Positions 8,001-36,300 of a stretch of 64,000 nucleotides of DNA are shown in pieces. The stretch is taken from contig NC_135767.1 of assembly GCF_052425735.1 (NCBI RefSeq), positions 20,150,001 through 20,214,000 on the forward strand, in the 5' to 3' direction. Each line of letters opens with the position of its first letter. Positions within the stretch are counted from its first letter, which is position 1. The DNA comes from Oculina patagonica (lineage: Eukaryota). The translations under genes and the position numbers were made by a program. The notes under the pieces were generated by a model that had not been told where the DNA came from, searched no databases, and worked only from the letters and a program-made list of their open reading frames with translations.

Positions 8001-11000
8001 ATCCTACATGTATCTACCCCTGTATATTCATGTAATAATACTTACTCCTGAACTGGTTAATTCTACTGCATTGCCACTTGTTGTTGTTGTTGTTGTTGGC
8101 TTGTGAGGACGACGCAAGACTGCAAGTACAGTGTGAGACATTGATGGATTTTTGCTTTTGCCTGATTTTAGGGTGAACACTGTCATTGACTGTACAGGGT
8201 TAGCGTCTTATCATGGATTCCTTCCAACACTCACGAGAAATTGTATTCAAGCTCTCACAGGTGGAGCATAGTACTCTACAACCGCATATTTCTGACAAGC
8301 TTTTTTGTTTATGTTCGTATTGTAAATACATGTAGATGTTTGTAAGCAAGTCTGACTTTCCTTGGTTTTTGAGGCTCAAAGAACAATAATTTATGTTCTA
8401 ACTTTTTTTTCATTGAATTTTAGATCCATTGGCAGATTCCCTTCCACTGCCTTTTGCAACTGGCCTGTTTTCATTTCTCTACCACTTGGCTTATTATGAA
8501 ATTGGTAGGTACATGTACAATGAAAATATTGTACTACATTAGATACATCAGGTACTGGACTTTTTAAGGTCAGACAACTGTGCTATATTTCTATGTCATA
8601 CCTAAGGTCGGCAAACACAAGCGGACAAGTCCTTGTGACTATTTCCTGCGATTAGCCCCTTGAAGAGTTAACTCCTGTGTACTAGCTGCTGGAACTTGTC
8701 TTTTAATGCATTCTGACCTTAATTTTGAGGACAAGCGCTGGGAGTCCTATCAATTCAAACCAGTTTAAATTCGTCTGACAAGTTGCAGGGATCAATGTAC
8801 TGTTTTTTCCTGGGACTGAATTTTTTGTCGAAAATAGGTGGTTCACGTGAAGGGACTTGATGCAGGGACTAGCTAGGACTTGTCCCCTTGTGTGCTGACC
8901 TAAGAAGACTTGATAGTGAACTGTACAGTATTTGAACAATATGATCTTGTTTTTAAGCTGTAGTTTCTTGTTTGGTTTTTCCTAACCAGGTGCTGAAGCA
9001 CTTGTGTCTTGTGGTTTATTGGAAGCTCTTCTGAGAGTTGTTGAACATCAGGGAGGAGACAGTCATCTGACGGTAAGAAAATGCTGTTTGGTTTTAATTT
9101 TGATCTTATCTTCTGTGTTTCAGTGACAGCATTTTTTCCTTAGTTTATCTGAATGTTGACACATCAGATTCTGCTATTAATAATAGTTGTATTTTGCAAG
9201 TTGTCTTGTAATTCTTCTTGATGTGGTGTCTGTGTTTTGATCACCAGTTTGTGACAAGGGCCATTCGTATCATGGAGTGGATTGCGAACATGGATCTGTC
9301 TGGATATCAGAATCAGACTGGATTGACTGCTATTATCAACAGACTTGAGGTACATTGTACACAGTTTGCAATGCAAAATAATCTTTCATGTGAATTATCA
9401 CTTGCTAGTAAACTTGTTATGAAGACAAAGGCCAGAATGAAGCATGTAACGGATAAACTGAGGTTTTCAGTGATATGTGAACTGTGAAATTCAATCCTCA
9501 ACCAACAGTTTAAGCTTTTTGCTGTCGTCAATCATCTTAGCAGACCTTTTGGGAAACAGAAGTTCACTACTGGGTGAAAAGGTCACATTCGTCAGTTGTG
9601 ATTGGTAGATTTTGATCCATTTTGTTTGTTTCTGTTTTTCATGGTTTGTTGGCTGTTGCCATAATTATGATTGGCAGCATTGAAAAATGCAGTCATATAA
9701 GATAAATTTTGAACTGGATTTTGGAAGAGTTTCGCATATCACTGAAAACCAAAAAAAATCACAGTCACCTAGTGAATTGCATTATTCTTGCAGCAGATTA
9801 TTATGAAACATACCTAGCATTAAGCCAAGTGTGTGGCTTGTCCTGTGTGATATCATCAGGACTAATGTGGAGATAATTATATTCAGATAGTGCCAGTGCA
9901 CCTTACTTCATTTGTCATTATCTTTTGTTTGAATTTTCAGCAAGAAATTAAGAAATGCCAACCTCATCATGGAGCCATATTATCCCCAGACCTCCCCTCT
10001 GCTCCTTCCAACCAGCAAGATGGTGTTGCCATGGAAACAAGTGACAACCAGGGAGCCCAGCCTGATGCTCCTTCCCAGTCGAACCAGTCAGAAGAGGTTC
10101 CCATGGAAACTGAGCAACCTTATGTCAACAGCACAGGTGCCGAGGATAACAAAATGGAAGTGGACGAGCATGAAACAGGAAAAGAAAAGCCGCAGGTTGA
10201 GATGACAGTCGCTGGGCCAAGCTCCTCAGTGAGTCCTGTGAGCAAGAACCGGTGCTTGCCTCAACGAGCGGCTCTGATCAAAGCTGTTCTTAGCTTTTTA
10301 AAGAAGTCCATTCCAGATCCTTCCTTCTCAGAGAGCATAAGAAATGGTAAAGTTAGCTACTGTTATTTTGAGTGTGTTTTAAATGACAGGAGAAATGAAA
10401 AAATACTAATAAAAACTGAACTGTGTTTGTTTCAGTTATGGATAGCTCACTTCCAACCTCACTGAAGTACATAATCAGCAATGTTGAGTACTACGGTCCA
10501 GTCCTTTTCATGGCAGGTAAGTCTTAACGTTTCCAACAAACTTATGTGTATAATCTTGTGACTGGTGGGAGGTGCAGTGGCCTAAAGGTTAGTGCACTGA
10601 CCTCCAGATTGAGTTGTCCAGGTTCAAGCCCTAACCATGTCATTCTGTTGTTTTCTGGGGCAAAACACTGCACTCACCGTGCCTCTCTCTCCACCCAGGT
10701 GTATAAATGGGTACCAATGGATTTAATGTTGGGAGGGGCAACCCTGGGATGGACTAGCATCTCATCCAGGAGGGAGTTGAAATACTCCTACATGTAGTCC
10801 CTTCATGCTACAGAAACCGGACTACATGTTACCTCCGGGCTGATGGATCACTAGGCTCAGATGCAGACAACCTAATCTTGTGACTGTTAAATGATAATCA
10901 GTTTTTGAGATTTCTGACCTTCAGTCTTGGTTCCTTTCTCCATACAGCCATTGACGTGGTGACTGTGTATGTCTTTCATGAGCCATCTCTTCTCTCGTCA

Positions 11001-14000
11001 CTGCAAGACAACGGTTTGACTGCAGTTATGCTCAAAGCTTTGGTCGTCAAAGAGGTCAGTTCTGCACTACTTTTCGTGAAGCATATTTTTAAAGACTGAT
11101 TTGGCAGGAAGTATCAGCATATTAGGCTGCCAAAGGCGCCTGATATGCTAATGTCCGATCTTGTGCCGTATCTCTAACTGTGAAGCACATTGAGCTCTGT
11201 AAATGCGCAAAATAAGAACCATTATGATAATCATAATCATCAGGGTTTTCAAAACAAGCTGGCACCGGCCACCAAAGTTCCACCGGGCTACTTGATTTTA
11301 TGTAACTGGTTACTTTGGCCATAGCAATAAGGTTGTGAGAAACAAGCTCAGCTTGTCACAGTGGTCTACTCTTCCAGTTGCTGACGCCTACTTCAAAACA
11401 TTTTGAAATCCCTGCATTATTGATGTTTCATATACATGTATATTATGTTCTTTTTCTAGGTTCCAGCTACACGTGAAGTTCTCTCATCACTGCCCAGTGT
11501 GCTCAGTGCGTTGTGTTTGAATACTCGTGGACTCCAAGCGTTCATGAGTTGCAAGCCCTTTGACAAGCTGTTCAGAGTGCTGTTATCTCCAGATTACCTA
11601 CCAGCAATGAGGCGTAGAAGAACTTCAGAAAGCCTTGGTAGGATTACTAATAACATTTTCAATTTATTGTACATACTACATAGTGAGGTCTTCATGTACA
11701 CATTTTTTTGTGTCAACCACAAAGGGAATTCTCACAAGCTGATTTATTTGTTATTGAAAAGAGGTTGCATTGTCGGTATCTGCAGCTTCATATCTTATTG
11801 TGGGGTTGTTCGTAAAACCAATGCTATATTTACCAACCAGTAGTTTTGCATCGTTGGATCACTTGTTGTAAATTACAGGTGCATCCTGGACTAAGCTGGT
11901 ACATTTAGATTTTTCATTAAATATTGTACATTGTCATTATTTTAATCCTATACAGTCATGGATTGAAAAACACTTTTCAATCTGGGGATATTGTTCTGAC
12001 ATACACTGTACCTATACATGGGTAAACAGACAACTTTCCCTGTTTTCTTATGTCAAAGCCATATGTACAGAAGTCTGCATAGAGTATCTGATTTGTTGGA
12101 ATAAAGAAAGTTGAAGCATGACAACCAATCAGCAGCACTACACAAATCCTTATAGGAAATCCTTATAGGATTATAGTCCTGACCTGTCTTCTCAGAATTA
12201 ACATTAAGAAAATGCAGTGTTTAAGTAGAAATAAGTAAGAAGAATAGATTTCTTGAGTGTAGGACTGAAATAATTGATTTTTTTGTTGTAGGTGAAACTG
12301 CTTCCAACCTTGGCACTGCAATGGATGAGCTGATGAGACACCAACCCACTCTAAAGACAGATGCTATGACTGCTATAATTAAGGTAAATTTGTTACACAA
12401 CTTGGGTATCCATTTGTTCTAGTAACTTAGTATGATTTTGNNNNNNNNNNNNNNNNNNNNNNNNNNNNNNNNNNNNNNNNNNNNNNNNNNNNNNNNNNNN
12501 NNNNNNNNNNNNNNNNNNNNNNNNNNNNNNNNNNNNNNNNNNNNNNNNNNNNNNNNNNNNNNNNNNNNNNNNNNNNNNNNNNNNNNNNNNNNNNNNNNNN
12601 NNNNNNNNNNNNCCCTCTCCCATCCTCTCTTCTCCCCTCTCCTTTCGCCTCCCCTCCCCTCTCTTATCCACTCCTCCCCTTTTCTCTCCACTCCTAATTA
12701 CATGTTACAATAATTGTGATGGGCGACTCTTTCTTTCAGCTCTTGCAAGAGGTCTGTGCACTAGGCCGGGACCCCAAATACATTGGTTTCAAGATGGGTG
12801 CTAAACCTGACAGCAGTGAAGTAGACAGCGGCAGTGGATTGGGTCAGGGAACTGGGCGTGTGGCTCCAGTGTCTGAGGAACCAATGTCAGATGAGGAAGA
12901 GGACGATGAAGATAGATTCAGCTTTACCAGTACTACTAGCACTGCTAAGGTCGTCGCTGACAATGACAAGAACAAAGATAGCTCAAAGTATGATAGCTGC
13001 ACTTAAGAGCTTTTACCATGCTTTGTTGTTTAACATCATTAATTTTTATCAAGGGCAGAAGTGTAAGAAACACTGGAGAAATTTAGGATACTCTTGTTCA
13101 CTCTTATAGTAAAGCAAAAAAAAACACCTTTTGTAAACCTGTATGTTTTCTTAATAACCTTTAAAAGAGATTATTGATGTCTATTTATGCAATTCTTTTA
13201 TTTTAAAGGAATGCCGAAGAGGAGAAACGGACCTTCATTCCGCTCATGGATTATATCCTGAATGTGGTATGTGCAACATACCGGTAATCTGTTGACTATA
13301 CGTCTAACTGCACCACGCAACCACCATAAAACATTTATTTTGATAATCATTTTGTTTCATGGCTGTCAATAAGTTTTTAAGTAATGTTTAACAAACTCAC
13401 AGTTCATGCTTTATCAAGTCTAAAACACGAGGCTGCGCCTCGTATTTTAGACTTAATTAAGCACAAACTGCGAGTTTATTGAACAGCTTCAAAAACCTCT
13501 GATGAAGATCTTTTCATTCTTGCACTGATATTTAGATTTTGAGTAATTTTGGCCAAAAAAAATTGGACATAAAAATTTAGCCACGGGTGTCTTTATCAGA
13601 TATACAGATACAGTGCTTCAAGCTCAAGTTTTTCAGAAGTCGCACTTTGGCGACTTTCTTTTGTAAAATGGTCGCCACTAGAAAAATTTTGGTCGCCAAA
13701 AGCAAAAACATTTTAGAAGAAGACACTTCATGTCGCTTTACATAGAGTAATACTGCTGACCATGATGAGCCGAATAGAAATCGTTCGGAGAACGTTTCGA
13801 CGAGGTTATTTTCGCTTGCATTCCAAAGTTTTTTGGTTGATCTGTTCTAATTATCGTGCAGAATAGTAAATAAATGATAAGAGAAACAGGTAAGGAAGAT
13901 AAACATGCAAAACAAGTTTATTCTCGTGCAGTACAGTAAAATAATAGAAACATAAATGTGGTGTTCAAATTAATGGCGGCTCCACGATCAAAGACATCAA

Positions 14001-17000
14001 ACCCAAACAGCAGTCCAAGCCAAACGGATAAGCAAGATGCACGACTGAAATAGTTGTAATGGAAAATTTTGTGGTGAAATTGCTTAGTAATTATACTGCA
14101 AAAAACAAATGATGCCTAGCCAGCCCTTTACACTGCACTGGTCGCCAAATTGGGGACCTGTTTGGAAAATTTAGTCGCCAAATTTTCTTTTCACTCGCCA
14201 TGGCGACCAAAATGGTCGCAGCTTGAAGCGCTGAGATACTCATTTAACATTAATTTCCTTTGTATTTTCTTAATGAATTATTCATGAGTTTTTAAAGCAG
14301 CTGTTACATTGAAGATAACACCCATAGCATTTCGCTCGATCTCTACCCAAGAGTAACATAACACCGATCGACATCTTCACCTGTTATATTGAGTGAACTC
14401 AGCCATAACAGGTGTTACGGTTTATGGCCCTTCATGACAACCTTGTGGTTGGTTAATGTTTTGCCAATATTAAAGGCTTAATTTGTTGATGGTTAATTTT
14501 ATTGCAGGTTCGGTTTGTGGACTCGATTCTCAGCAACAATTCAACTGATGACCACTGCAGAGAGTTTGTTCGTCTTGGAGGATTAGAACCTTTGATCAAT
14601 ATCCTTGGTTTGCCTAACCTGCCACTGGACTTTGTGACCTCTCCTGCTTGTCAATCTGTCTCGGGTGTATGCAAATCTATCCTGGTGAGCATTTTTGTCT
14701 TAGTTTGACCAGTTTGAGCCGCAGTGACCTTATGGTTTGTGTGTCAGACTCTGGATCAAGCAGTTCGGGTTTGAGCCCTGTTGTGTTCTTAGGCAAGACA
14801 CTTTACTCTCAAAGTGCCTCTCCCCAACCAGGTGTATAAACGGGTACTGGCAGATTTACTGCTAGGGTAACTGTGTGATGGACTAGCATCTCATCCATGG
14901 GGAAGTAGAAATACTTCTAGTCCCTTATTGCTATGGAAACTGGGATAAGCTCGAGCCTGATAAGCCTCTAGGCCTGAATGCTGGCTTTACCTTGCCTTTA
15001 CCTTTTTATCACAAATTCAAGTGGGCAAGTTAAGAGATTGATGCAGATGTTTATCAGTGCTCAGCAGCTTATTAGGAATGCTACCCTTATAACCAAATCT
15101 TACAAGTCCCTACATTGTTTGTAATGAGAACGCTTGTGCACAGATGTTCTTGATTCATTGATGACAACGGAACTCAAAAATAATTATTAATGTTCTTTTC
15201 CTTGGTGCAAACAAACTGTATTATTGATTTTTTTCTAACAAAAACATAAAGTTGTAAATCCTGCGGTAACAGCTTTTCAAATCATTCGTGAGAGTGAAGA
15301 TGCACTGAAAACAAGAACATGAATTTCTCATTACCATCTGTGGTTCAAAAACGCCTGTGCTAAAGCATGACAAAGTGTTTGATAAAGTGGCAGTGTTTGA
15401 CCAGTTGCAGAATGATACAATGCTCCAAATCATGAATATTTTATTTTCATTTTTTAGATGTTATCCCATGAATCCCAAGTGTTAAAACAAGGCCTTACTC
15501 TGCTCAGTGAAGTCCTTACTTCCCTGGAACCTCTGATTTCAAGATCAGAAGGGTCTCCATTGTCTATCCTATTACATGAGGTGGTGTCGTCAGGCAGGCC
15601 TCAACAGGCCATGGCATCAGTGCAGCTGACTCCACTTTTGCATGGAATTGTAGCATGTCATGCATACATTAGCAAGTTCCTTCATGTGTGTAAAGTGGGG
15701 CAGGTAAGAGCATGCTTTGTGATGGTATCCATGGTAACAGTTATAGCAATAGCAAACAATCCTTGAGGATTTTTAGGTGTTAAGTTTCCATTCTGCAGCA
15801 GAATTTTTGACAAATTTTCTAATGTTTTGACAGTTTGACATCCGTACCTTGTGTGTGAATCACTGGGGTTCTGATCAAGGCATCAATGTACTAAAGCAAC
15901 TCGGTCAACTCTACATGTTCCTCATTTGGGAGACTATTGTGTTGGAAACCATTAGCAAATCAGAAACATCACCTGATGAAACGAAGGTTGTTGACAAAGA
16001 TCTAGAGATGCTGAGAGCATCAACATCAGCAAATCAGGAAGAACCATCAGGTAAGAATAAAAATTGTCCTGTAAAAATAAAATTATAATGTTCCACTCTA
16101 ACCCACTGCAGTGCTGTGATTTTAGGAGTTCCTTTGCATAAAAGGCTTGATGATTTCTGGTTCATTTAAATAGGAGACAGACCCAAAACGTTTTTGTGTT
16201 AATGGAAATGTAAGGTCTGTTGAGCTGGCGACACACTAGGCAATTTGATCGCCTGCAGCGATCAGCTAATAAAATCACAGATATCTGGCATGCCAGATAT
16301 CGGCAATTTTATACGCTGGTTGCAGCAATCAGCGAAAATCCCAATCGCTGCACTGGGCACACTTGGCGATTTTCACTGATCGGAGCGATTGGCGATAAAA
16401 TCGCCAAGTGTGTCGCCAAGGGAATGAGATGAGCAATGGCTCATCAGTGTTGACACTCAACTTCAGCTTCCATCACATAAAATGACTTCAAGTCCATCAT
16501 AGGTTACATGTTCCTCCCAGCATTTGGTTGGTTGCGCCTTACTCTGGATGGCAAGAGGCACTGTGAGAGTAAACAATCCGGCCCAAGAACGCAGCAGAAT
16601 ATATCCAGCTGAGGCTCAAACCTGGGTCTCTCATGATTGAAAGTCCAGTGCACTAGCCATTGCACTAAACATTAAGCCACAGTAGTGACTCCCATGCAAA
16701 TAACCTATAAAATTGAAAAGAATTAATGGTCAGTGAAAGAAGTATTAAAGGGAATTGAGCTACAACTGAGTTGTGAGCAAGAGCAGCATCATAATTAATT
16801 TGATATTATTTTTGTTTCAGTTTCAGGGCAAACACCTGAAGGCAGTCCAGCAATAACAGTGACAAATGACAAGGAAGGAAGCAGTGAAACTACAAATGCA
16901 AAGTCCAGTCTTCTTCCTGAACAGCAAAGAATTATAAAACAACTTCTGCAGACATCAACTGCTCTTGGCAGAGCCTTGTCAGACCTGTTTGTCCTTCTTG

Positions 17001-18319
17001 TAAAGTTAAGCGTTGGATCAGCTCAGCGACAGCGGCGAGCACCACACACTGCAGCCACGCCTGGTCTTCCGACCCTCCCAGCACGTCATGTTGCTTTACA
17101 GCTAAGCAAACTGCTGAAGGATGCACTGATTTGGCAGGGTCTCCCCAGTAATACTTCAGTGCCCAAACTAAGGTACAAGTACTGCAAGAAAATTAACCAT
17201 TATTTATATATTCAGAGTTTGTATAAGTCATAGAAAACCTGGGAAGTCATGGCATTTTAGAATTTCATTTTCCAGTCCTGGAAAGTTGTGGAATTTAAGA
17301 GTGGGTCATGGAAAGTCATGGAAAATGGTATTGATTGTACAAAAAATTAGGCAGGTTATTATTTTTGAAAATTTCCAAGAAAAATGGTCAAATTTAGGTC
17401 ATGGAAAACTTTGAAAGGCATTGAAAAGGTTATAGAAAGTCATGGAGTTTTACAAGCTCAAAAGAGTATGAATCCTGATATTGCTTTAGCTGATTCCAAC
17501 TTGTCATAAAGGCAGAAGGTTTTAATATGGGCCTCTCTTTTTCTTGTGTGTGCGTGTGTTTATGTATAACTAAGCATAAAAAATACCAACTTTGTAATTT
17601 CGTTTTGAAAGATGAAATAAAAGGTGTAAAAAAGTAGACCAAAACAATTAACTTATTCTATAAGCTGCCCTCTTCGTGCAGAGCACAATCTGAACCTTCA
17701 CGTCTGATCAATTTTATGCTCATTTATTGTAGGTTTCACTTCCATATGTGTATTGTTGGCTTTGCTTCACGCCTGCTGTTTGATGATAAGAAGAACCCTT
17801 ATCATTTGATGCTGCAACAACTTGTCATGTCTGGGGCACACAACAGCCTTTTCTCGTAAGTCAGATTCAAACCTGAGTTTTTTTTTCCTCTTGAAATTAC
17901 TTCCTCATGTACTATTATGCTTCTTCTCTATCCTTCTATTGATCTTCTCCTCCCCCAACTCCCCTGTTTGTCTGTCTGCCTGTCTGGCTGTCTGTCTTTA
18001 TGTACAGTGTATAGGTGCCATTGGGCAAGTTGATAAAATTTCAATGGTGTAGACCCAGGGGGGGTACTCCGGCTTGTAAATGACGGGGTTGATCGAAGGA
18101 TTTTTTTGGGTTTGAAATTTTCGAGTCCGGGATTTTTTTGGGTTGGAAAATTTGGCAAGTATTTTTTGGGGGGTGACTTGATTTAAATAGGGGAAAGTGC
18201 CTTGGCGGGGCCTTGGCGAATTTATGGTATGATAAATAAACAAACACGAGCGTTCAATTTTTTATCATTTTCTTTGTGTTATATTTTTGCCCCTCCTGGC
18301 AATTAAGGGGTAATTTGAC

Positions 18320-18353
<34 letters not shown>

Positions 18354-21300
18354 GGGGGGGGGGGGGCTATTTTTTGGTCCAGGGATTTTTTTGGGTAATG
18401 TCGGAAGACTTAGGGATTTTTTGGGGTCCTGAGTTTTGCCTCCATTCGATCATCCCCGTCATTTACAAGCCGGAGTACCCCCCTGGGGGTGTAGACTGCT
18501 GTCAGTTATAGACTGTTTAGCGTTGCTGCCTGATGATTCACCAAGCTAAGACAAATGATTTGCATTTTCTTCTTGATCAACATTTTCTTTGTTTGTATGG
18601 CTGCTTCAGGTTGTTAAAGGTCATATTGAGTGAGGACAGCAAAGCACCCATGAATGAAAGCTTAAGTCAGTCATGTTTTCAAGGTAAGGATTAGTGTAGG
18701 GATATCCATTATATTACTATGTAACTTGTAGCAGGTTTTCGAGGAATTAGAATTATTATTAGGGTCAGTCGCAATGGCCAGTTTCCTCTATCAGACGCGT
18801 CTGCACAGAATCGTGGTAGTTGTATTCAGTAAAACATGCACAAGACTTGAATGAATACAACTTGAATACAACTACCCGGGGGGGGGGGTACTCCATATAA
18901 CGGCCTATACGGGGGAGGCTCCGCCCGAAAGGGGTACCTTTTTCAGGCTTCAGGTATATAAAAGGGTAGGTATTTCACGAGTTTAAGTATATGAAAGGGT
19001 ATGGAAATCTGTCATTTGGCTATTTAAAAGGGCATTAAATTAAAATATTTCGAACAGACGCAATTTATGGCTGTATTATTTTAATTTATTAAGCGTTACA
19101 TAAAAATGACAAGAAAACGTGCTATTTTAAGTCCACGCCATGTCTCTTAGGTATATGAAAGGGGTACCTTTTTTCAGTTAAAGGTATACGAAAGGGGTAC
19201 AATTTCTGTCAAAAATGGTATAATTATAAAAGGGTAAGGGGTTAGAACTTGGGGCGGAGCCTCCCCGTATAAAACTTTTTGGAGTACCCCCCCGGGCAAC
19301 TACCATGATTTCCTGCAGGCGTGTCTCATAGACCAGGGTACATTAAGTGTACACACCACTCTGAAGATATGCCAAGTTTTTTTTATAGGTCTACACCAAG
19401 GTCCTTTATTATTCATAACTACCGTATTTATTCGATTAAGCGCCCAACCTCGAATAAGTGCCCACCTCGAATAAGCACCCACCCTGTATGTAGGAAAAGT
19501 TTATAAGCGCCCACCCCCACCCCGCTTAAAAGAGGGCACAAGAGGAATTTTGATTATTATTAAAGTTGAGAGTGAAATTGACTGCGTACTGCTAATAGAA
19601 GACCCCAAAGGCCAAGTTTTTTGTACTTTTTTAACAAAACTTTCAATGAACAGTTAAAATTTAGCTTTGGTGCATCTTCACGTTTAGTTATTATACATTT
19701 TTTTCTTGCAAAATAAATGTACTAGCTAAAATGGTGAGAATTTAATTAGCGCCCACCTCGAATAAGTGCCCACTCTCAAAGTCCAAAAATTTAATAAGCA
19801 CCTAGGGCGCTTAATCGAATAAATACGGTAAAATAAGTCGTCTGCTTGCCAGATAAAAGGTGCCGCCTACAATCGTACGCCAGTACACCACGCAATTTGG
19901 AAATCCACGCCGAAGATCTTTGGCGTAACCTATGTAGAATGCAGCCTGTTTCATAGAGGAAATTGGGCATTTTTCCTTTGGGCAAAGACAAAGCTATTAG
20001 GACTTCAAAGCACATTAACAAACATATAAGGACTTCAAAGCATATTAGGACTTCATCTCGGGGAATAGTCACCACGATTCACTTCACCTTTGGTGAATAA
20101 TTGTTAAATGTACCAACAAATTCCCGAGACTAACATTTATTGAACTAATATTTTTGGACTTGTAACTGAAATGGTGAACTGGTAAGTGTCAAGAACTAAA
20201 CTTCTTTCTTTTTGTCTTTAGCTGGCTCACAGGAATTGTTGGACTCGTGGTTAACACTGATCAGTAGACTGGCAAATTCGGAAACCCTGATGGACTCTCC
20301 ACACAGCCTTCCTCCAACATCTACTGCACCCAGCTTTGTGCCATTTAACCCTGTCCTTTTCCTTGTTGCAACACAAAAGGTAGGTTGAACTCAAAGGATT
20401 ATTTTTATCTTTGTCTTGGTGAAAGATGTAGTTAGGGCTTGCACCTTGCCATTCTCTATGTGCCATGTTCTTCGCAAAGTAGTGGGGGCTTAATAATTAG
20501 AGTAAATGACTCTGCATTGTCGGTATCTACTTCTCACATGTTTTGTTGTGGGTTTTGTTCGTTTAACCAATGCAACATAAATTTAAACCAGTTAGTTGCA
20601 TCGTTGGATTGCCTGGGTTTTTTTTATTCAGATATATCCTGGACTAAACTGGTACATATTAACTTGTACATGCACTTTCGTGCTCACTCTCTCCCTCCTC
20701 CCTCCTTCATTCACTCCTTCACCTGCTCACTCACTCACACAGTTCTTTTGCTCACTGGGTCACTCCTGACTCACACTCACTCAGTTACTTTCTCCCTTGC
20801 TCCTGCTTCATCCCTCCTTTCTCCCCTTCTCTTTCCTTCCTCCCTCTCTCCCTCCCTGACTGCCTTCCTGCTTCCCCTCCAAATCCCTCTGTCCATCCTT
20901 ACTTGTTTTCTTCTTTTTATGTGCTATATTATACATTTCTTTATGTGCACTGTCAGTTGTATATCATCATCATCACCATCACCATCATTTATTAGCCACT
21001 TTAAAATTGAAAACTAGCAAAAACTATGTTAGGTAAGGCGTGGAAACCTCCAAGAAACAACCAGGCTTATAAGGGAGGCCACCTCAGTTACCAATGTGTT
21101 AGAAATTTAGTTGTGGATTTCACAAGTTCGCTCTTGCCTTCATTTCCTCTTTTACAGAAAGCATTCTCGGCAGTCCAACAACTCTGGGGACAAAAACTTC
21201 CCAAAGAGTATGGTCCACACATGGCTGAGTCAATGCTGGCCATCCTGTACCACATCATAAAGGGCGAGGCTGTTATCAAAGAGAAGCTGGGACCTGCACC

Positions 21301-24300
21301 AGAGAGCGCGTCATCTACCAGCAGCTCCTCTACTGCGGCAGCAGCAGTGGCAAGACCACCTGATGAGCCTGCACACGCCCAACCTGAGATTAACATGCGG
21401 CATTTACAACAGGTACAGCTGCATTCATTTATTCTCTAGCTCCTGTATTCAAGCTTTATACATGCAGTACATTTTACAGTGTAACTTTTGAGCCTGCAGA
21501 TCAGGTCCATGCGTGACCATCCGGCATTTAGATGAAAGCTTCTGGGCCACATCTTGTACTGTTTATTATGTTATGAAATTGAATGTTTGACCATTCAAAT
21601 GAAAGATATTTAGCTTCCTTTCTGTGGTGCTGTTTATTATGATTTACAAGTTGGTTTTAAGTCTGAGAATGAAACCCAAGTGTGCGGCCATTCACATGAA
21701 ACCTGTTGGCAATACCCACAGTGTTATTCTTGAAAGTTACATTTGACATAAATTATATAATGGCTTTCTCAACAATCAGCCAACTGTTTGTTTAGTTTAT
21801 AGACATGGGTTTCACTCATGAACATGCCAGACTGGCCCTGTTGAGCACAGGGAGCCTTGAGGAGGCAACTGATTACATCTTGACTCACCCTCCACCACCG
21901 CCTGCTAGGGTAGGTATCATGTTGTTCATAAACCAGTCATTTTGGCATTATGCCTAAAATTAATTGTTTGTTTTTGCCTTCCCTGGGGATTTTTTCCAGG
22001 TTCTTTACTAGCTCAAGGTGCAGGCTAAGGTTTGGGGCTGTTTATGCGAGTGACAAACCTCTCACTCATAAGGCCCCATAGTGCTTACAGGCTAGTTCCA
22101 CAGTTTCATGTCCACACTGAAGCGAGATCTTCTAAAGTTGCCTCACAGGCAATTCTATAAGGGCTACTGAAATAAAGCTCTGAAAATTAAATATCTAAGC
22201 TACATTTCGCTCTAAATATCTCAATAAAGTTTAATGAAACGTTTATTGACTCATGTGTTGTATTTCTTCGCCTGCGCGGGCCGTTTTAAGATAGTTATAA
22301 AGGCGCTTAAAATGCCCCGCGCAGGCGAAGAAATACAACACGAGTCAATAAACATTTCATTAAACTTTATTGAGATATTTAGAACATAATGTAGTTAGAT
22401 ATTTAATTTCTAGAGCTTTATTTCAGTAGCCCTTATAGATTTCAAAATTTCTTTTGTTCGTCCCATGTCACCAACAATAATTAACCACGAACACATAGGG
22501 TGGTCTGCCTGTGGTTGCCTTATGCCACTTTGATTCAGCTGATCTAACACTGCAAGGGAATACTGGTTGCTTCATGTTCCAGCCAAGCAAATTCTTTCTC
22601 CTCTAACCAAACCCTTACCCTTAGTACTTGTGTGTACCAGCCCTTAGTGGGAGGCGCAGTGGCCATATGATTAGCGCTTAAGACTCTGGATTGAACAGTC
22701 CAGGTTCGAACCCTGGCCCGGGTCACTGCATTGTGTTCTTGGGCAAGACACTTTACTCTCATAGTGCCTCTCTCCACCCAGGTGTATAAATGGGTACTGG
22801 TGGAATAAAGCTGCTGGGTATCCTGCAGTGGGCTAACATCCCATCAATGGCCCGTTTCTCGAAAGTCCAGGAAACTTTTCGAGCCCGTAAAGCAATTTTT
22901 AATTATCTGTATCTCAAAAACAGAGAAGCGTATACGAGTGAAACTTTGTATGTAGGGAACCTCTGGTCATATTTTAAATATGCGAATAAAAGTCAGCTCT
23001 GAAATCACAAGGTTTAAGAATTTGCTATGGCTTTCCGGGTGCAAAAACTTTTCGGGACCTTCGAGAAACGGGCCTCAGGGGAGAGTAGAAATATTCCTAG
23101 CTGCTTAATGCTACAGAAACTGTGATAAGCTCCGGCATTATGGGCCACTTGGCTCAAGACTTACCTATTTACCAGCCCTAAGGAATTCATTACTTAAGAT
23201 TTGATGCTGCTTGTGCTGTCTTGAATCACTACTATCTTTGGTTGACTGTTATCCAGTTCTTTACCTCCAAATTCAAACCCAAGTCCTGGTGTTGAACTAC
23301 ATCGTCTGATTTTTCTTATTAGGAGCTTGGTTTGGATTATGACATGTTAGAAGAAGATCAAATGATGCGGGCCATAGCTATGTCCCTTGGACAAGACATA
23401 ACAAGTGCCCCTGCTGATGATCAGGTATAATAATCAAGTTCTTTTATGACCAAAAATTAAAATGTCTCCCTATGCTTACATTAGGTTTGGAAAAGCTGTG
23501 AGCTTTGTTATTAAGAAATTCGAAATTGAGATTTGGTGATTCATCCAGTTTTATTTTTAGAAGCAGACATTGTCAGATTTGAAGAATTTCATAGGACAGT
23601 CAACTCTCTCTAAAAGGGACACCTTCGGGACCGGCTCCAACTGTCCGTCTTAGAGAGGTGTCTGTCTTATAGGGAGTTTAGTTACAGTAGAATTACTGAA
23701 AAACAGCAGGGACAGGACCAACACCAGGTGTCCGTCTTATGGCGGTGTCCATCTTATAGAGGTGCCCGTTAATTATAAAAGAGAGTTGACTGCATATTAT
23801 GGGGCCAAGTTTTCTGTGTGCAACAGAAGAAGCATTGTCGGTATCTGCAGCTCCATATCTTATTGTGGGGTTGTTCGTAAAACCAATGCAATATTAACAC
23901 ACCAGCATTTCTGCATCGTTGGATTGCTTGTCATACATTGCAGGTATATCCTGGACTAAGCTGGCACATAAAAAAATGTATTCTCCTTATTGGTTGACTT
24001 ATTTTAGGTTGAGTAGCTCAGGGCTCATATGAATGGCTTGCTACTCTGCGAACAAGACGAACAATGCTCCTAGCCCCCTAAAACAATAGCAACTGCTACA
24101 CTAGAGAATCAGCAGAATTACCAGCTTACAAAAACTGCTACAGTACTGCTTATATTCTGTATTTTTCATAGCAAGGTAGACATGTACAATTCAGATGTGA
24201 CTTAATACTTTAAGACCCTGACACTCTACTAACTTGTGTTTAGCCTGCTGCTGCTGCTACCGATGCTCCCTCTGGTGCTACTGGTGATGCCACCACTTCT

Positions 24301-27300
24301 ACTCCTGCTGCGACAACTACCCCAAAAACACAGAAGAAGGAAGAAGAGCCTATGGAGGATAAATCAAAAGAAGAAAAAGACAGAGATGATTCAATTCCAC
24401 TGGAGAAGACTGTGCTAGATCAGTTTACTGCCGACATGCTGCAGGGCTGTCTTGAAGTGTTGACTGGAATGCCTGCAACGGTGTTTAAAGCCTGTGATGT
24501 TCTCTCTGTGGTGGCTCAACGTAATGGAGAGGGGTGGAAGGAGAATACAATGATGCACATTCTAAAACAGGTGCTGTGCTTTTTCCTTGCATTAATTTTT
24601 TTAACCTTGAAAAACGGGTTTAAAGCCTGTCGTTGATTGATTTCAGGTTAATGAATTGTTGAATTCACCAGTAAAAATAATTTGATTTTTCTTACCAGTA
24701 AAAAAAAAAGGATTTTTTGTTACCAGTGAAAATGCTTTGATTCTGATTTTTCTTTTCTTTGTTTTTTTTACTGTTGTATTCTTGGTTTTTGATGGTGGTA
24801 CTCTTACTTTTCTTCAGGTTACAACAGACATTGGAACCGTTTTGAAATCCTGTACTAATCAAACTGCCGACACCAAGCAACTTGAGGAAAGTATGTCACA
24901 GATGAATGGCATGGCTGAAGCGGCACGTTTGTCGTCACTTTTACATCTCACGTGCTTGTTATTTGAGGTACGTAGTTTACCAGTATATGATAACTACATG
25001 CAGTTGTTGAATAATTATTGTGATTAAAAATTAAACACATCTCCTTTTCCCAATGCTTTTGTTTAACAGGAGAAGAAATTTCAATGTGAAGCCATCATTG
25101 AGAAGTTTGGCATCCTAAACTCGTTGCTAGAGCTGCTTGAACTGTGCCAGGCAAATCTTGTACAGATCAAGTTGATGGGAAGCAAAGCTACTACACCAGT
25201 GTATGTATTCATCTCTTTCAAAAACAATGTTTATTGCAGAAAAAATTGTTCGGCAGGTTATTTTTGATGTGTGAAGCTCTGCTGGCACTAGGCATCCTGA
25301 AGTGTTGATTCTCATTGTGTACTTAAAAAGAAGTTGATTAGTAATTTCCTACATTTCTGTTTCTCATGCAGATGGTTGTCTCCACTTATACTTTTTTTGG
25401 ACACCCACGAGAAAATGGCAGTCACTACTAAGAGAAAACAACTTCATGACAAGGTAGAGGAACATTAACAAGTTAACATCAGTCTTCATGCATAGAGCTG
25501 CCATCCCCTCCTGACGGTTATTAATTTTACATGTCATACTCAACTCATAATCCTCTTCGCACCTAAGAGGCACATAAGGCCGAGACTAGGGTTTACACGT
25601 AGTATGGCCTTTATTGTGGTCAACCAGTCTCTAGACAGAGTACCAATCCCATGTTTGCCCAAAATTCTTGCAGGAGTCGTGAACCTCCACAAAGGGCCAA
25701 CAGACACATGACACACTGAAATTAATGGTTCCAGGTAGTAGGGTGGGAGATCCTTTTGATTCAAGCAAATAAGATTGGCACTATGTGTCCAAAGGCAGTT
25801 ACTCCCACATACACTTATACAGTTCTGTATAATCCTGATTCATCGACCCCCAGTTTCTTAAAACTCCCGAACCAATTTTTGTTCCCCTTGGACAGTTCCC
25901 TCTCTACTGGCCCTTCTGTATGTCCAGATAGTAATCCAGTCTGTACTTGAGCCAACAAGCTGTTGATACACACTGAAAGCTATAAAATTAATGCTCATGC
26001 GTAGCTATTTGTTGATGAACATATTTTTAAACGGCATTAACTGCATAATGTTCTCAGTGTATTTTTTTTTTATGTTTTAACATGCTGATAAATTGCCACT
26101 GTTTTTTTTTTAATATAGTGCACTACTCATGCCTGGAAATGGTTTGATGACCGGAGTGGTCGCTGGTACAACTACAATGTCAACAACAATACAACCATTG
26201 ACACAGCATACAGAAATGGAGATTCACGAGTCAGGTAATTTGTAATGTTCAGTGCAGTCACCTCTCTTTAAATGAGCAACCTTATAAAAGGGCATCTTTC
26301 ACAAAGAATCACAATAATTTGAAAATATCTCATGTCAGTTGGAGGCGCGGTGGCCTAATGGTTAATGGTTAGCCTTGGCGGAGTCACTTTGTTGTGTTCT
26401 TGGGCAAGACACTTTACTCTCATGGTGCCTCTCTCAGAAGTATAAATGGGTACCGGCGACATAAATGCGGGGGGTGGGATCCTGCAATGGACTTGCATCA
26501 GATACAGGGAGGAGTAGAAAAATTCCTAGCCGCTTAATGCTATGGAAACTGGGATAAGCTATGGCAGTGTGGGCCACATGGCTTGTGGCCTACCCCTTCA
26601 TGTATGTAGTTAGGCTAACTGTAACTTACTTCATTTCTCAAGGTTTATGGCAGGAAGACGACGTTATTTGGTTAACTTTTCCACCATGGTTCAGGTAAGT
26701 TTTTTTCTTGGTTATTGGTTCATAACCCTTCTTAGAGTGGCACTTGATGTTCCTATTCCTTAAACTATGTTGCACTGTGCTGTGTTGCAGGTAAATGAAG
26801 ACTCAGGCAATAGACGTCCTATAATGCTGGAGGCAGTCGACAACTCCAGTAATGGTGCTTCAACAGGCAGAAGAGATGGCGCAGAGAGCTCATCAAGCCG
26901 CACTTCTGTTACTGGTGGTAAAGGAAGTGGGGATGATTCTCAGAGCTCCTCCCAGGGGAAGCCTAGCAAGAAAGCAAAGAAAGATAAACAAGACAAAGAT
27001 AGCCCAGGTAACAATTTTTTGTGTTGATTTGTAATCGTAAAAGTTCCACGACACAAACAGCTCATTTGCAATCCGTGTTAATCTTTGTTTATCTTAACCA
27101 GCCTTGTTTTTTTTTTTTGGTTTATTTTTACTCCTTTGGTGTTTCTCTACCTTAGTAAACTCAGTGTTCGTATGGGTCCTGGAAAACCTGGAAAGTCCTG
27201 AAATTTTATTGTGGCACTTTCCAGGACTGGAAAGTCTTGGAAAAAGACAACTGGCCCTGGAGAGCTTTCAAAACTAACATTATAAGAAATGTATGGCAGA

Positions 27301-33300: not shown

Positions 33301-36300
33301 ACAAGAAGTTAAGACCCCTTCCAAGCCCCTGTTACCCAAGTCAGCCATTCTGAAGCTGTTAGCAGAGCTGGTTAAGTCCTATGCAGGAGTAGCACAGCTT
33401 ATTACAGACTACAGTCACACTGCCAAGATGTCTTCAGCATCAGAGGTAAGTCATGTTGTAACATAAAAACCTATGGATACTACTCCTGTAGCTAGTCCTG
33501 AATATAGTTCTCTTTTTGACATCACCCAGCTTTTGCATAGTACCTTCTGTAAATAGTCCCTCCCTTAAGACACTATGTAGATAGTATTCCTGGCAGCGAA
33601 ACAAACTGAAATAGTCCCCTTATCGATAATCTGCAAAGACCCCAATGTCTTTAGACCCATCCTTTTCACTTTAGAAAGTACTCCCTTTGAATAGTCTCAC
33701 ATTGTGCCTGTCTAGACAACCCCTCTGTGGTTGGTCATGATGCATTGTACTAGAAGAAGACAGCCCACAGGCCTTACAGACATTCCCCTTTATGTATAGT
33801 GCATCCAAATTACTGATAAAATCAAGAAGTCTTTTAAGACGTGTATACCACATGGAATAAAGAAGTATTTTGCTAACTGTGATAAATCGGTGTGTTTGCT
33901 TGTGTTCACTTCTTTTTTTTTATTAATTGCTCACACAAAAGTTGCTTAGTTTACTGTAAGTTTAGTTTTCTCTTGTATTGTAAGTTTATTTAATTCTGTA
34001 ATACCTATTTTTTTCTTTATAACGTCTGCGTTGCTACCGTTGTTTTCAGTTCACTGTAAGTTTTGTTCTCTCTTGTATTGTAAGTCTTGCAATTTTGTAG
34101 TAAATAATAAAGATGGTAAATTTTTTAAGCTCGGTAATAAATAATGAAGATGAAGTATTCAACATGACACGAGCATGGGACAAAGAAAAATTCTGAGTCC
34201 CCGACGGGAATCGAACCCATGGCCTCCCAGATACCGGTTGGGCGCTCTAACCAACTGAGCTACGAGAGACTCGTTGTGAGCTGGGCCATTTCACAAGGTT
34301 GATAAGTGACACACGTCCTGCATACTGCTAGGATCAGCAATGTCGAATTCATCAAGTTTGTAGTAAATAATAAAGATGGTAATTTTTTTTTGTAATTTTG
34401 TAACACCTACTATTTCTTCTTTTGTAACGTCCGCTCTGCTTGTGTTCACTTCACAGTATGAAGGACCAGTCCTAGCCTTCATTCTAGATCATCTTCTCCC
34501 ATCTGGAACACCAACTGACAATGAAGACACTCCTTCTTACGCACGCATCTTACTCGCAACAATTGCTACGTGTCACCAGGCACCTGAAGCACAGCAGACC
34601 CTCATTGCCGAGATGAAGGGCTCTCTAGGGCGAGCACTGATCCTACCAGAGTCAACTGCCAAGCACTCCAGGCTGCAAGCAATCTTCACTTTGGTGCAAA
34701 CCATGATCGAGTCTGGACCACAGTCCGCCCAGCATGCTGCAGCTGCAGCAGGAGCACAACCTAACAACGTCATGAAGCTACTGCTGAAGAAAGGACTCGT
34801 CAACGACATGGCTAGGGTCCCACACAGCTTGGACCTGGCCAGCCCCAATTTTGTGGCCACCATCAACTGTTTGTTAAAGCCTATGGAGAAGCTGTCTGGT
34901 GTAGTGAACCAACAGAGTTCCAGTGGTCTGCCCACTACAGCTGGTAAAGATCAAGCACCTGGTGGTGATCTGCAACCAACAAGTGGACAGGGTGCTGTAG
35001 CCGAGTCAGAATCTCAACAGACCTCATCAGCTGGTAAGTGATTATAGAGATTTACATTGTGCAGGGATGTAGCTAAGCCGGCTCATCAACAAGCCCAGTT
35101 GGCTTTTCTGGCCTTGGAAGCACTAAAAATTTACCTTTGTCTTTGTTTTCTTGTGAAATTTCAGCCGGATTTAAGTTCTCTTTCAGCCGGTGAAATAAGC
35201 CGGCAGCCGGCCCTTAGCGCCGACCCTGAATTGTGTAGAATTCTGAAATGCAGGTTTCCTAGTTGTAAATTAGAATGTATGTGACTGTTATTTTGGCAGG
35301 AAAAAATTGTAACCCATTATCGTTATAACTAATGGGGGAGGTTTTACCAAATGTTCTATTAGGGATAACAAGTTCTTAAAAGGTTTGTTAGTTCATACTT
35401 TTACAATCCCAAAATGGCCAAACTGTCCTCGAGTAATTAGCTAAGACTGTTTGCAGTTTCACAGCATGGTTTCGGCTATTGATCCCACTGTTTTAGTCCA
35501 CTGAAAAGTATGAATCTCCAAAATGTTTCAAACTGATGTTTTTTGCTCGAAAGGTGTTTATTTAAGATAAGTATTTTAACCAGAACAGTTACTTATTTCT
35601 CAAACTGATTCTGTTGTTGATGTGTTAGGTCAGACAACTGAAGGAACCAATGAACAACAGGCAGATGAGAGCCAGCAATCAACTGATGCAACACCTAGTC
35701 AAGGTACACACCATCACTACAAAGTGCATATCTTCCCTAATGCTTTTCTTATAATGCTTTGTAATTTTGGTAAGTTGTTCTACCATGGCTAAACTTAAAA
35801 CACACAGACCTTATTCTCAGGTACAAGGTATGCCTCATGAGGTGAACCTAACATTCAAGTTTGTGGATGAAACCACAGTGTGCAATTATATAAATGAACA
35901 ACATTGGGCAATACCCTTATGAAGTGTTATAGAATTTGGAGTGTTTTTTCACTCGGTAAATGCAAGCTTATCATTTGAATCAGTACTTGTATAGCTTTCA
36001 ATACTCTTTTGTGTAGCTGGGCTGCAAGTAATTTTTTTTTCAATTGAAAGGACATATGTCCTACTAAGACACCATCTTGGTCGGACAAAACAAAATTCTG
36101 GTCGGACAGGTTTTTATTCACTGTTGCCGTAAAATGATTTACGATCAAAAAATTGTCCGGCATCATGTCCGACCACACTTGGGATTTAGTCGGATATGAG
36201 CAAATTTTGGTCGGCCAGTGTCCAATGACCGACTGTTATTTTCAGCCCTGGTGTAGGGTTTTGTTTCACATATCAGCTCTCAGTGACCTGAAAGGGATCC

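Follow-up and report, generated by a model that had tools for sequence, protein, structure and literature searches.

Three paralogous copies of a probable box H/ACA snoRNA gene in introns of a coral HUWE1-like gene

What are the three related stretches of DNA that lie in separate introns of a HUWE1-like gene of the coral Oculina patagonica? They are contained in a window of 64,000 nucleotides (assembly GCF_052425735.1, contig NC_135767.1, positions 20,150,001 to 20,214,000), which is the whole stretch of DNA analysed here, and had been read in an earlier note as SNORA8-like H/ACA snoRNAs. It is highly probable (roughly 0.87 by our own estimate) that the three copies, designated c1, c2 and c3, encode one canonical box H/ACA snoRNA as paralogs, each in a different intron of this stony-coral HUWE1 gene and in the sense orientation.

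Intronic copies and their host gene

The three sense-strand paralogs placed in the window by the earlier note were recovered at the same coordinates, with lengths of 141, 147 and 141 nt and each in a separate HUWE1 intron. Their elements were as follows.

11766 to 11906, + strand: c1, putative H/ACA snoRNA copy, 141 nt; pocket 1 is CGGTATCT (11774-11781) with TCGT (11810-11813)
11826 to 11831, + strand: hinge box ATATTT of c1, an imperfect H box; the ACA of this copy is at 11901-11903
11848 to 11855, + strand: pocket 2 of c1, GCATCGTT, with TGG at 11887-11889
20513 to 20659, + strand: c2, putative H/ACA snoRNA copy, 147 nt; pocket 1 is CGGTATCT (20521-20528) with TCGT (20559-20562)
20575 to 20580, + strand: H box ACATAA of c2; ACA at 20654-20656
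20598 to 20605, + strand: pocket 2 of c2, GCATCGTT, with TGG at 20640-20642
23831 to 23971, + strand: c3, putative H/ACA snoRNA copy, 141 nt; pocket 1 is CGGTATCT (23839-23846) with TCGT (23875-23878)
23891 to 23896, + strand: H box ATATTA of c3; ACA at 23966-23968
23913 to 23920, + strand: pocket 2 of c3, GCATCGTT, with TGG at 23952-23954

Diagnostic 13- to 15-mers occurred exactly three times in the window, and a covariance model search of the window yielded no fourth copy. The layout claimed earlier, i.e. hairpin, H box, hairpin and ACA followed by 3 nt, was present in c1, c2 and c3, but the H box of c1 (ATATTT followed by A) is an imperfect ANANNA. Folding resulted in two hairpins with internal loops for each copy, with z-scores of -2.8 (c1), -1.9 (c2) and -3.0 (c3), and the 5′ upper stem of c2 contained three mismatched pairs. 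A compensatory stem change cited in the same note could be confirmed at pair 99/123, which is UA in two copies and CG in one.

The host was HUWE1-like, its + strand exons coding for DUF913, UBA, UBM and HECT. The introns carrying the copies had GT/AG borders at ~11638 and ~12291 (c1), ~20380 and ~21157 (c2) and ~23425 and ~24242 (c3). Their relative numbering as introns 19, 29 and 32 agreed with the exon count, c1 and c2 being separated by ten exon blocks, and c2 and c3 by three. The flanking exons and the one assembly gap nearby are listed below.

11460 to 11637, + strand: HUWE1 exon Eb, coding for part of DUF913; it precedes the c1 intron (donor GT at 11638)
12292 to 12383, + strand: HUWE1 exon Ec, ending in TAIIK, between the c1 intron and the intron holding the gap
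12441 to 12612, no strand: assembly gap of 172 N in the Ec/Ed intron, touching no snoRNA copy and no exon
from ~12740, + strand: HUWE1 exon Ed, downstream of the intron holding the gap
20200 to 20379, + strand: HUWE1 exon El; it precedes the c2 intron (donor GT at 20380)
21158 to 21418 (approximate), + strand: HUWE1 exon Em, downstream of the c2 intron
23320 (approximate) to 23424, + strand: HUWE1 exon Eo (UIM-like); it precedes the c3 intron (donor GT at 23425)
24243 to 24590 (approximate), + strand: HUWE1 exon Ep, downstream of the c3 intron

The assembly gap starts 535 nt downstream of c1, i.e. in the next intron, and is without effect on the snoRNA finding. Both exons flanking it, Ec and Ed, are intact with a junction in phase 0, and as they lie only about 100 nt apart in the related locus L001, there is no room for an exon lost in the gap.

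Guide pockets, H/ACA class and relation to SNORA8

Both pockets matched 18S rRNA at the sites named in the earlier note, as judged by complementarity with box spacing (Taoka 2018, PMC6182160); target identity rests on the eukaryote-wide conservation of 18S, the 18S strings not being from Oculina patagonica itself. A 40-nt pattern for the 18S locus had no match in viral_contigs, and the strings were therefore taken from papers, those flanking the sites being confirmed by an 18S primer and by 18S genes given in print. Pocket 1 formed 8+4 bp (8+6 in c2) bracketing the U of 18S GACGA-U-C-AGAUACCG, 16 nt from the box, and pocket 2 formed 8+3 bp bracketing the U of 18S CCA-U-A-AACGAUGC, 14 nt from the box; the two target uridines are 25 nt apart. 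All 21 distinct homologs showed 8-9 plus 4-6 bp to GAAGACGA-U-C-AGAUACCG with the H box 16 nt away, and likewise 8 plus 3-5 bp to AACCA-U-A-AACGAUGC with the ACA 14-15 nt away. The bipartite pairing of an H/ACA guide, which leaves U-N unpaired, was thus found in these 21 homologs, among which the only guide substitutions were C-to-U changes compatible with wobble pairing. Psi1056 of 18S lies within A-Psi-CAG and Psi1081 within ACCA-Psi-AAACG (Taoka 2018, PMC6182160). The first site corresponds, as had been stated, to yeast Psi999, guided by snR31, and to human Psi1056 (PMC2794176), and human ACA8 (SNORA8) is listed as the functional homolog of snR31 (PMC2780460).

The succession of hairpin, hinge, hairpin and tail, with an internal loop in each hairpin, was observed both in the folds and over the 21 distinct homologs. 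In alignments that were fitted to the model structure, 93.8% of cells were paired over these homologs, compared with 31-39% when the partners were slid, 18 of 33 stem pairs had compensatory changes on both sides, and none of 500 shuffles reached the observed pairing values. The upper-stem sequences of L012 and L022 differed and their basal stems were partly changed, with pairing and guides being kept. A perfect H box was present in c2 (ACATAA), in c3 (ATATTA) and in 13 of the 21 distinct homologs; c1 and seven others showed ANANN followed by T or G, mostly then by A. The ACA box was found in 20 of 21, the remaining one having AUA. Paralog similarity and ortholog conservation both stop about 3 nt past the ACA, the 3′ end of the RNA being read from sequence only. 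A search for transcript contigs, in which an ORF running through c3 was looked up among called proteins, gave no candidates.

Scanning of the window with Rfam at gathering scores detected only a tRNA. A cmscan comparison with Rfam SNORA8 (RF00393), proposed earlier as a check, failed to reach the threshold of 38 bits; the best score was 19.2 bits (c3, E 0.2), c1 gave no match at E up to 10, and the relatives L006 and L012 scored 16.4 and 13.1 bits. Other H/ACA models also scored below threshold, i.e. TtnuHACA23 with 22.3 and ceN38 with 21.5. The SNORA8 model nevertheless aligned end to end with c3, at exactly 23831-23971, and human SNORA8 is, like the coral element, an intronic box H/ACA guide, of about 139 nt, for the Psi1056-equivalent site (PMC2780460). 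The consensus 3′ pocket of SNORA8 (GCAUCaUUGG ... CCUGGU) appears to resemble coral pocket 2, whereas the 3′ strand of its 5′ pocket is UCAA as opposed to UCGU in the coral. Human ACA8 (SNORA8) resides in JOSD3 (TAF1D), as the earlier note had it, in contrast to the coral host HUWE1, and has also been assigned a 28S site (PMC2653536). Of the host switching proposed on this basis, the difference between the two hosts stands, but no direction follows from the data. Confirmation of SNORA8 as a guide for Psi1081 was not found in the literature.

The yeast snR31, Arabidopsis snoR5 and Neurospora Nc ACA5 RNAs address the same conserved uridine of 18S helix 24 as the coral RNA would. The yeast snR31 is longer and independently transcribed. 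The site is Psi999 in yeast, Psi1000 in Arabidopsis and Psi996 in Neurospora (PMC2780460, PMC2794176). Nc ACA5 is intergenic, has a length of 187 nt and serves the site by its 3′ (ACA) hairpin (PMC2780460), whereas the coral RNA would use its 5′ hairpin for helix 24 and serve a second 18S target in addition.

Distribution among relatives and alternative explanations

A total of 32 copies was found, three in the window and 29 on 21 related contigs, all of them HUWE1-intronic and on the sense strand. The pockets had been described as invariant; the guides were almost so in 27 copies, but the 5′ pocket was changed in the five copies of L027, the most distant locus with copies, where all five lie in a single intron. 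Scanning of JGI metagenomes with the guide sequences only revealed nine true copies on eight contigs, all in HUWE1, and no true copy outside this gene; four of 12 pattern matches were discarded as chance matches lacking an H/ACA fold. The covered introns of the more distant HUWE1 loci L025, L026 and L028 (44-49% identity tier) contained no copy. The evolutionary span covered extended down to about 50% amino-acid identity in HUWE1 exon Ei.

The c1 copy has a same-intron ortholog at L001:586-726, c2 has same-intron copies in L001, L003, L024 and L027, and c3 has same-intron orthologs in the loci of all 17 close relatives. Conservation took the form of a sharp island of 141 nt, with an identity of 0.70-0.90 compared with about 0.1-0.5 in the flanking intron. 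The earlier proposal of intragenic duplication from intron to intron is strongly supported by three observations: across lineages the element is seen in six different introns of HUWE1, c1 falls within the c3 clade, and decayed relics of the copy in the c2 intron (El/Em), in which precisely the guides and the basal stem are gone, occur in L004 and L009. Guides are under purifying selection, stems are under compensatory evolution, and residence is strictly HUWE1-intronic across many relatives.

A short mobile element, or a snoRNA-derived retroposon family scattered genome-wide and merely resembling an H/ACA RNA, might likewise present a duplicated unit near the size of the mature RNA between unrelated paralog flanks. 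All 32 copies, however, occupy syntenic positions on the sense strand of HUWE1 introns, the metagenome guide-pattern scan revealed none elsewhere, and a true dispersed repeat found in these introns has many copies, none of them syntenic. The earlier note had reported an absence of target-site duplications and tails, and indeed such duplications did not exceed the chance level and the copies had no poly(A) tail in common; given also the single orientation in HUWE1 loci and metagenomes, a TE, SINE-like or retroposon origin was rejected and is considered extremely improbable. Strict association with HUWE1 over a considerable evolutionary distance could also point to a conserved intronic RNA structure acting in cis on the splicing or expression of HUWE1, rather than to a trans-acting guide. 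This explanation deserves hardly any credence, as the position varies among six introns, which is difficult to reconcile with a local splicing role, and as it is precisely the two bipartite pockets complementary to 18S, lying at the canonical spacing to the H and ACA boxes, whose nucleotides do not vary. The coupling to HUWE1 splicing suggested earlier holds as a generic property of any intronic snoRNA, but is no special finding. H/ACA pockets can serve multiple substrates, and one or both pockets of a real H/ACA RNA might act on another RNA (28S, snRNA or mRNA), the 18S matches being incidental; this is very unlikely, since both pockets fit known human 18S pseudouridines, which lie 25 nt from each other, by 11-14 bp at the correct spacing, and since these matches are invariant across the 21 distinct homologs.

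A further question is whether all three copies of the window are functional. It is possible, if rather doubtful, that only one of them, most likely c3, yields a working snoRNA, c1 and/or c2 being redundant and on the way to becoming pseudogenes. The imperfect H box of c1, the mismatched 5′ upper stem of c2 together with its weakest folding z-score, and the decay of redundant El/Em copies in other lineages are in line with this, and only the position of c3, out of the three, is filled in all close relatives. Guides, basal stems and the ACA box are, on the other hand, intact in c1, c2 and c3, c2-type copies with intact guides are conserved in the window, L001, L003 and L024, and c1 is conserved in L001. 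The ATATTT box is probably tolerated, as it also occurs in the c3 ortholog of L001.

Proposed biogenesis, history and significance

If c1, c2 and c3 are paralogous H/ACA snoRNA genes, each copy would be processed from the HUWE1 intron after splicing, cut back to a length of about 141 nt and bound by the dyskerin (Cbf5) complex. The 5′ hairpin would guide pseudouridine formation at the U equivalent to human Psi1056 and yeast Psi999 in helix 24, in the E-site region, and the 3′ hairpin at the U equivalent to human Psi1081. The El/Em copy (c2) is probably the oldest, the Eo/Ep copy (c3) would have been derived from c2 and the Eb/Ec copy (c1) would be a recent copy of c3, with redundant copies presumably decaying in some lineages.

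That a host gene can carry snoRNA paralogs in several of its introns is already established. In chicken, GGgACA4 paralogs are found in PABPC4 introns 6, 7 and 10, and the vertebrate TAF1D cluster has undergone lineage-specific intragenic translocation (PMC2653536). As in the coral, guide isoforms in these genes occupy several introns of one host, in an order and position that vary with lineage; the coral family differs in its host HUWE1, in the use of six introns across lineages and in the five copies within one L027 intron. HUWE1 as a snoRNA host was not found among the searchable papers. An intron of vertebrate HUWE1 hosts let-7f-2/miR-98, which is also a small non-coding RNA gene, but is of the miRNA class, differs in its biogenesis and is unrelated in sequence to the coral element.

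The coral element is very probably a real pseudouridine guide gene of an ordinary kind, and the sole trait beyond routine annotation is that it keeps strictly to HUWE1 while the intron changes. The family has shifted between six introns or more, has expanded to five copies in a single intron and has disappeared from others, with none found outside the gene. That the guide RNA is actually locked to HUWE1 seems unlikely. If such a lock were true, a snoRNA-sized unit may be put back by some copying mechanism into the very gene that transcribes it, or selection may tie modification of 18S at the decoding centre to HUWE1 expression. The orthologs of HUWE1 in yeast (Tom1) and human (HUWE1) break down ribosomal proteins made in excess.

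With this analysis, coral genomes gain a well-supported family of snoRNA genes that is probably still unannotated and that annotation pipelines based on Rfam would miss. For a non-bilaterian animal it predicts two 18S pseudouridines, of which the one close to the ribosomal E site is conserved between yeast and human, and it offers a clean natural example of snoRNA turnover by duplication between introns of the same host, redundancy and decay of the older copy.

Three H/ACA snoRNA copies and their predicted 18S rRNA targets

An earlier note had proposed three intronic paralogs on the sense strand, and alignment of the copies showed that they are real, as follows:

11766-11906, plus strand: c1, snoRNA copy of 141 nt, paralog of c2 and c3
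20513-20659, plus strand: c2, snoRNA copy of 147 nt, paralog of c1 and c3
23831-23971, plus strand: c3, snoRNA copy of 141 nt, paralog of c1 and c2

Mean column identity of the three was 81%, and the likeness ended a few bases from either end. Within the 64-kb window, diagnostic 13-15-mers had three occurrences and no more, and covariance models built from the family revealed no fourth copy. Each copy folds as two hairpins (z-scores -2.8, -1.9 and -3.0 for c1, c2 and c3, respectively). In the guide conformation, the 5′ half consists of a 6-bp basal stem (GCAUUG/CAAUGC), a guide loop (pocket 1), an upper stem and a hinge with the H box; the 3′ half starts with a second basal stem of 6 bp, continues with pocket 2 and another upper stem, and closes with ACA followed by 3 nt. 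The supposed layout of hairpin, H box, hairpin and ACA plus 3 nt fits all three copies, whose likeness ends about 3 nt past ACA. A perfect ANANNA H box is seen in c2 and c3 only, that of c1 being AUAUUU followed by A.

Both pockets were also complementary to 18S rRNA around the two named uridines, the equivalents of human Psi1056 and Psi1081, and at the proper spacing. Pocket 1 (CGGUAUCU + UCGU) brackets the U of GACGA-U-C-AGAUACCG with 8+4 bp (8+6 in c2) and lies 16 nt from the H box; pocket 2 (GCAUCGUU + UGG) brackets the U of CCA-U-A-AACGAUGC with 8+3 bp and lies 14 nt from ACA. Both distances fall within the 14-16 nt of the H/ACA spacing rule. The 18S strings were compared with mammalian, algal and human sequences, namely a mammalian 18S primer as printed (PMC11311268), algal 18S genes as printed (PMC8125830) and two fragments of human 18S produced by RNase T1, A-Psi-CAG (1055-1059) and ACCA-Psi-AAACG (1077-1086), which are 93-94% modified (Taoka 2018, PMC6182160). 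Human Psi1056 corresponds to yeast Psi999 (guided by snR31; helix 24, E-site region) and to Arabidopsis Psi1000 (PMC2794176).

Host gene and neighbouring elements

ORF fragments on the plus strand, from between the copies and from either side of them, matched DUF913 and UBA, and fragments further downstream matched UBM and HECT, which identifies the host as a HUWE1 ortholog. The copies occupy separate GT-AG introns. Copy c1 starts 128 nt past the donor of exon Eb (GT at 11638), and 385 nt separate its end from the acceptor of exon Ec; c2 starts 133 nt past the El donor (GT at 20380) and c3 about 406 nt past the Eo donor (GT at 23425). The relative intron numbering of the note agreed with the exon map, in which ten exon blocks lie between c1 and c2 and three between c2 and c3. 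One gap falls close to c1:

12441-12612: assembly gap, in the intron after that of c1, between exons Ec and Ed

Exons Ec (ending ...TAIIK) and Ed are both complete and in phase, and their distance in the related contig L001 is about 100 nt, too little space for a lost exon. The snoRNA finding is unaffected by the gap.

Other elements were observed in the same region. A tRNA-like gene at 34195-34270 on the minus strand, antisense within a HUWE1 intron (Rfam tRNA, 41.4 bits; tRNA-Thr (GGT) by ARAGORN), may represent either a genuine tRNA gene or a repeat of tRNA origin. A short conserved block at 25615-25707 between exons Es and Et, syntenic in L005 and L009, may be either a small exon or a further conserved element of the intron. 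Downstream of the HECT exon (54439-54798), a plus-strand ORF with an OTU cysteine-protease domain (60799-61767) is probably a neighbouring gene.

Structural conservation and relation to known families

Stem pairing was counted in an alignment of 26 copies (21 distinct sequences), with the loci L024 and L027 left out. In this alignment, which was fitted to the model, 93.8% of stem cells were paired, against 31-39% with partners slid, and 18 of 33 stem pairs showed changes on both sides; the observed pairing values were attained in none of 500 shuffles. The upper stems of L012 and L022 are visibly different in sequence and retain pairing. Guide nucleotides were invariant among the aligned sequences save for C-to-U changes, with which a G-U wobble with 18S is retained. 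At the c3 position, identity among 11 orthologs was 0.70-0.90 within the 141 nt versus about 0.1-0.5 outside. Decayed c2-type relics were found in the El-Em intron (between exons El and Em), at 9520-9606 in L004 and within that intron of L009 (about 1800-2270). The middle part of the RNA can still be aligned in them, whereas mutations have altered both the guides and the basal stem. These relics serve as an internal control for the outcome of lost constraint and show that a redundant copy was lost after c3 had arisen.

As to a mobile origin, the flanks of the paralogs were unrelated past about 15 nt upstream. Target-site duplications were no commoner than expected by chance, and the copies had no A-tail in common, just as the note had claimed. 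The same HUWE1 introns also hold a dispersed, TE-like repeat family with a unit of about 200 nt, which is non-syntenic, in contrast to the snoRNA copies. It was seen at 10568-10820, 14779-14993, 22705-22845, 23076-23171 and 26390-26586, and further at about 38652-38810 and 44784-44987, all copies matching one stretch of L009 (2770-2972) and L015 (4607-4901). A CT-rich low-complexity tract (CTCCCTCC-type) directly follows c2 (20680-20900), and similar tracts follow the c2 ortholog of L001 and the relic of L009.

The note had also called the copies SNORA8-like. Rfam reported no snoRNA family for them at gathering thresholds. In a permissive scan, SNORA8 matched c3 end to end (exactly 23831-23971) with 19.2 bits (E 0.2) versus a gathering score of 38, matched L006 with 16.4 and L012 with 13.1 bits, and did not match c1. 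Since these scores are sub-threshold and unrelated H/ACA families reach similar ones, membership in SNORA8 was not upheld. By inspection, the Rfam SNORA8 consensus GCAUCaUUGG...CCUGGU resembles coral pocket 2. ACA8 (SNORA8), snR31, Arabidopsis snoR5 and Neurospora ACA5 are listed together as guides of the Psi1056-equivalent site (PMC2780460); ACA8, hosted by JOSD3 (TAF1D), has also been assigned a 28S site (PMC2653536), and no confirmation of SNORA8 as a Psi1081 guide was found in the literature searched. By its sequence and structure, this is a real, canonical H/ACA snoRNA family, predicted to be expressed and to guide the two 18S modifications.

Distribution and turnover among HUWE1 introns

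HUWE1 contigs of relatives were reached via ORF fragments homologous to exons Em and Ei; they come from ENA assemblies, Tara coral metagenome scaffolds among them. JGI metagenomes were scanned by the guides alone (GGTATCT, gap, TCGT, gap, GCATCGTTGGAT), yielding 12 loci, eight of which carry nine true copies as judged by the covariance model. The other four were chance matches without an H/ACA fold. In total, 32 copies were obtained, of which the window holds three and 21 related contigs the other 29. All 32 lie in HUWE1 introns on the sense strand according to tblastx exon maps, and no copy turned up in another gene on the ENA contigs or in the JGI guide scan. HUWE1 loci in the tier of 44-49% identity had no copy in the introns covered.

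Introns occupied by snoRNA copies
Eo-Ep (c3): window and the loci of all 17 close relatives
El-Em (c2): window, L001, L003, L024 (about 60% exon identity) and L027 (five copies, about 54% identity)
Eb-Ec (c1): window and L001 only
Ei-Ej: L012
Ed-Ee and Ef-Eg: L022

The five copies of the distant relative L027 (122-134 nt each, at 12503-14388) lie 296-724 nt apart in a single intron, unlike all other occupied introns, which hold one copy each. Their 3′ pocket is intact and their 5′ pocket altered, with GTGTATCA in place of CGGTATCT. Another HUWE1 intron of L027 holds a weak H/ACA-like element (2544-2672; 18.4 bits) with the same basal stem (GCATTG/CAATGC), an ACATTA box, differing pockets and no clean ACA; it is possibly a paralog that has diverged or is dead.

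A tree built with FastTree from the 141-nt alignment, with arbitrary root and support not assessed, placed c1 within the Eo-Ep clade as sister to the c3 copies of the window and L001, the El-Em copies as the sister clade, and L024 outside both. This topology suggests an El-Em site that came first, a c3 copy that arose later and took its place, and a c1 copy derived recently from c3.

Paralogs in several introns of one host are already known from chicken GGgACA4 (PABPC4 introns 6, 7 and 10), as is intragenic translocation from the TAF1D cluster (PMC2653536), and turnover of snoRNA hosts is common in vertebrates (PMC13736004, PMC2817437). Text search found no paper on HUWE1 as a snoRNA host, and the H/ACA snoRNA family in coral HUWE1 is probably unannotated. 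Its mildly unusual trait is fidelity to the HUWE1 host together with turnover among introns.
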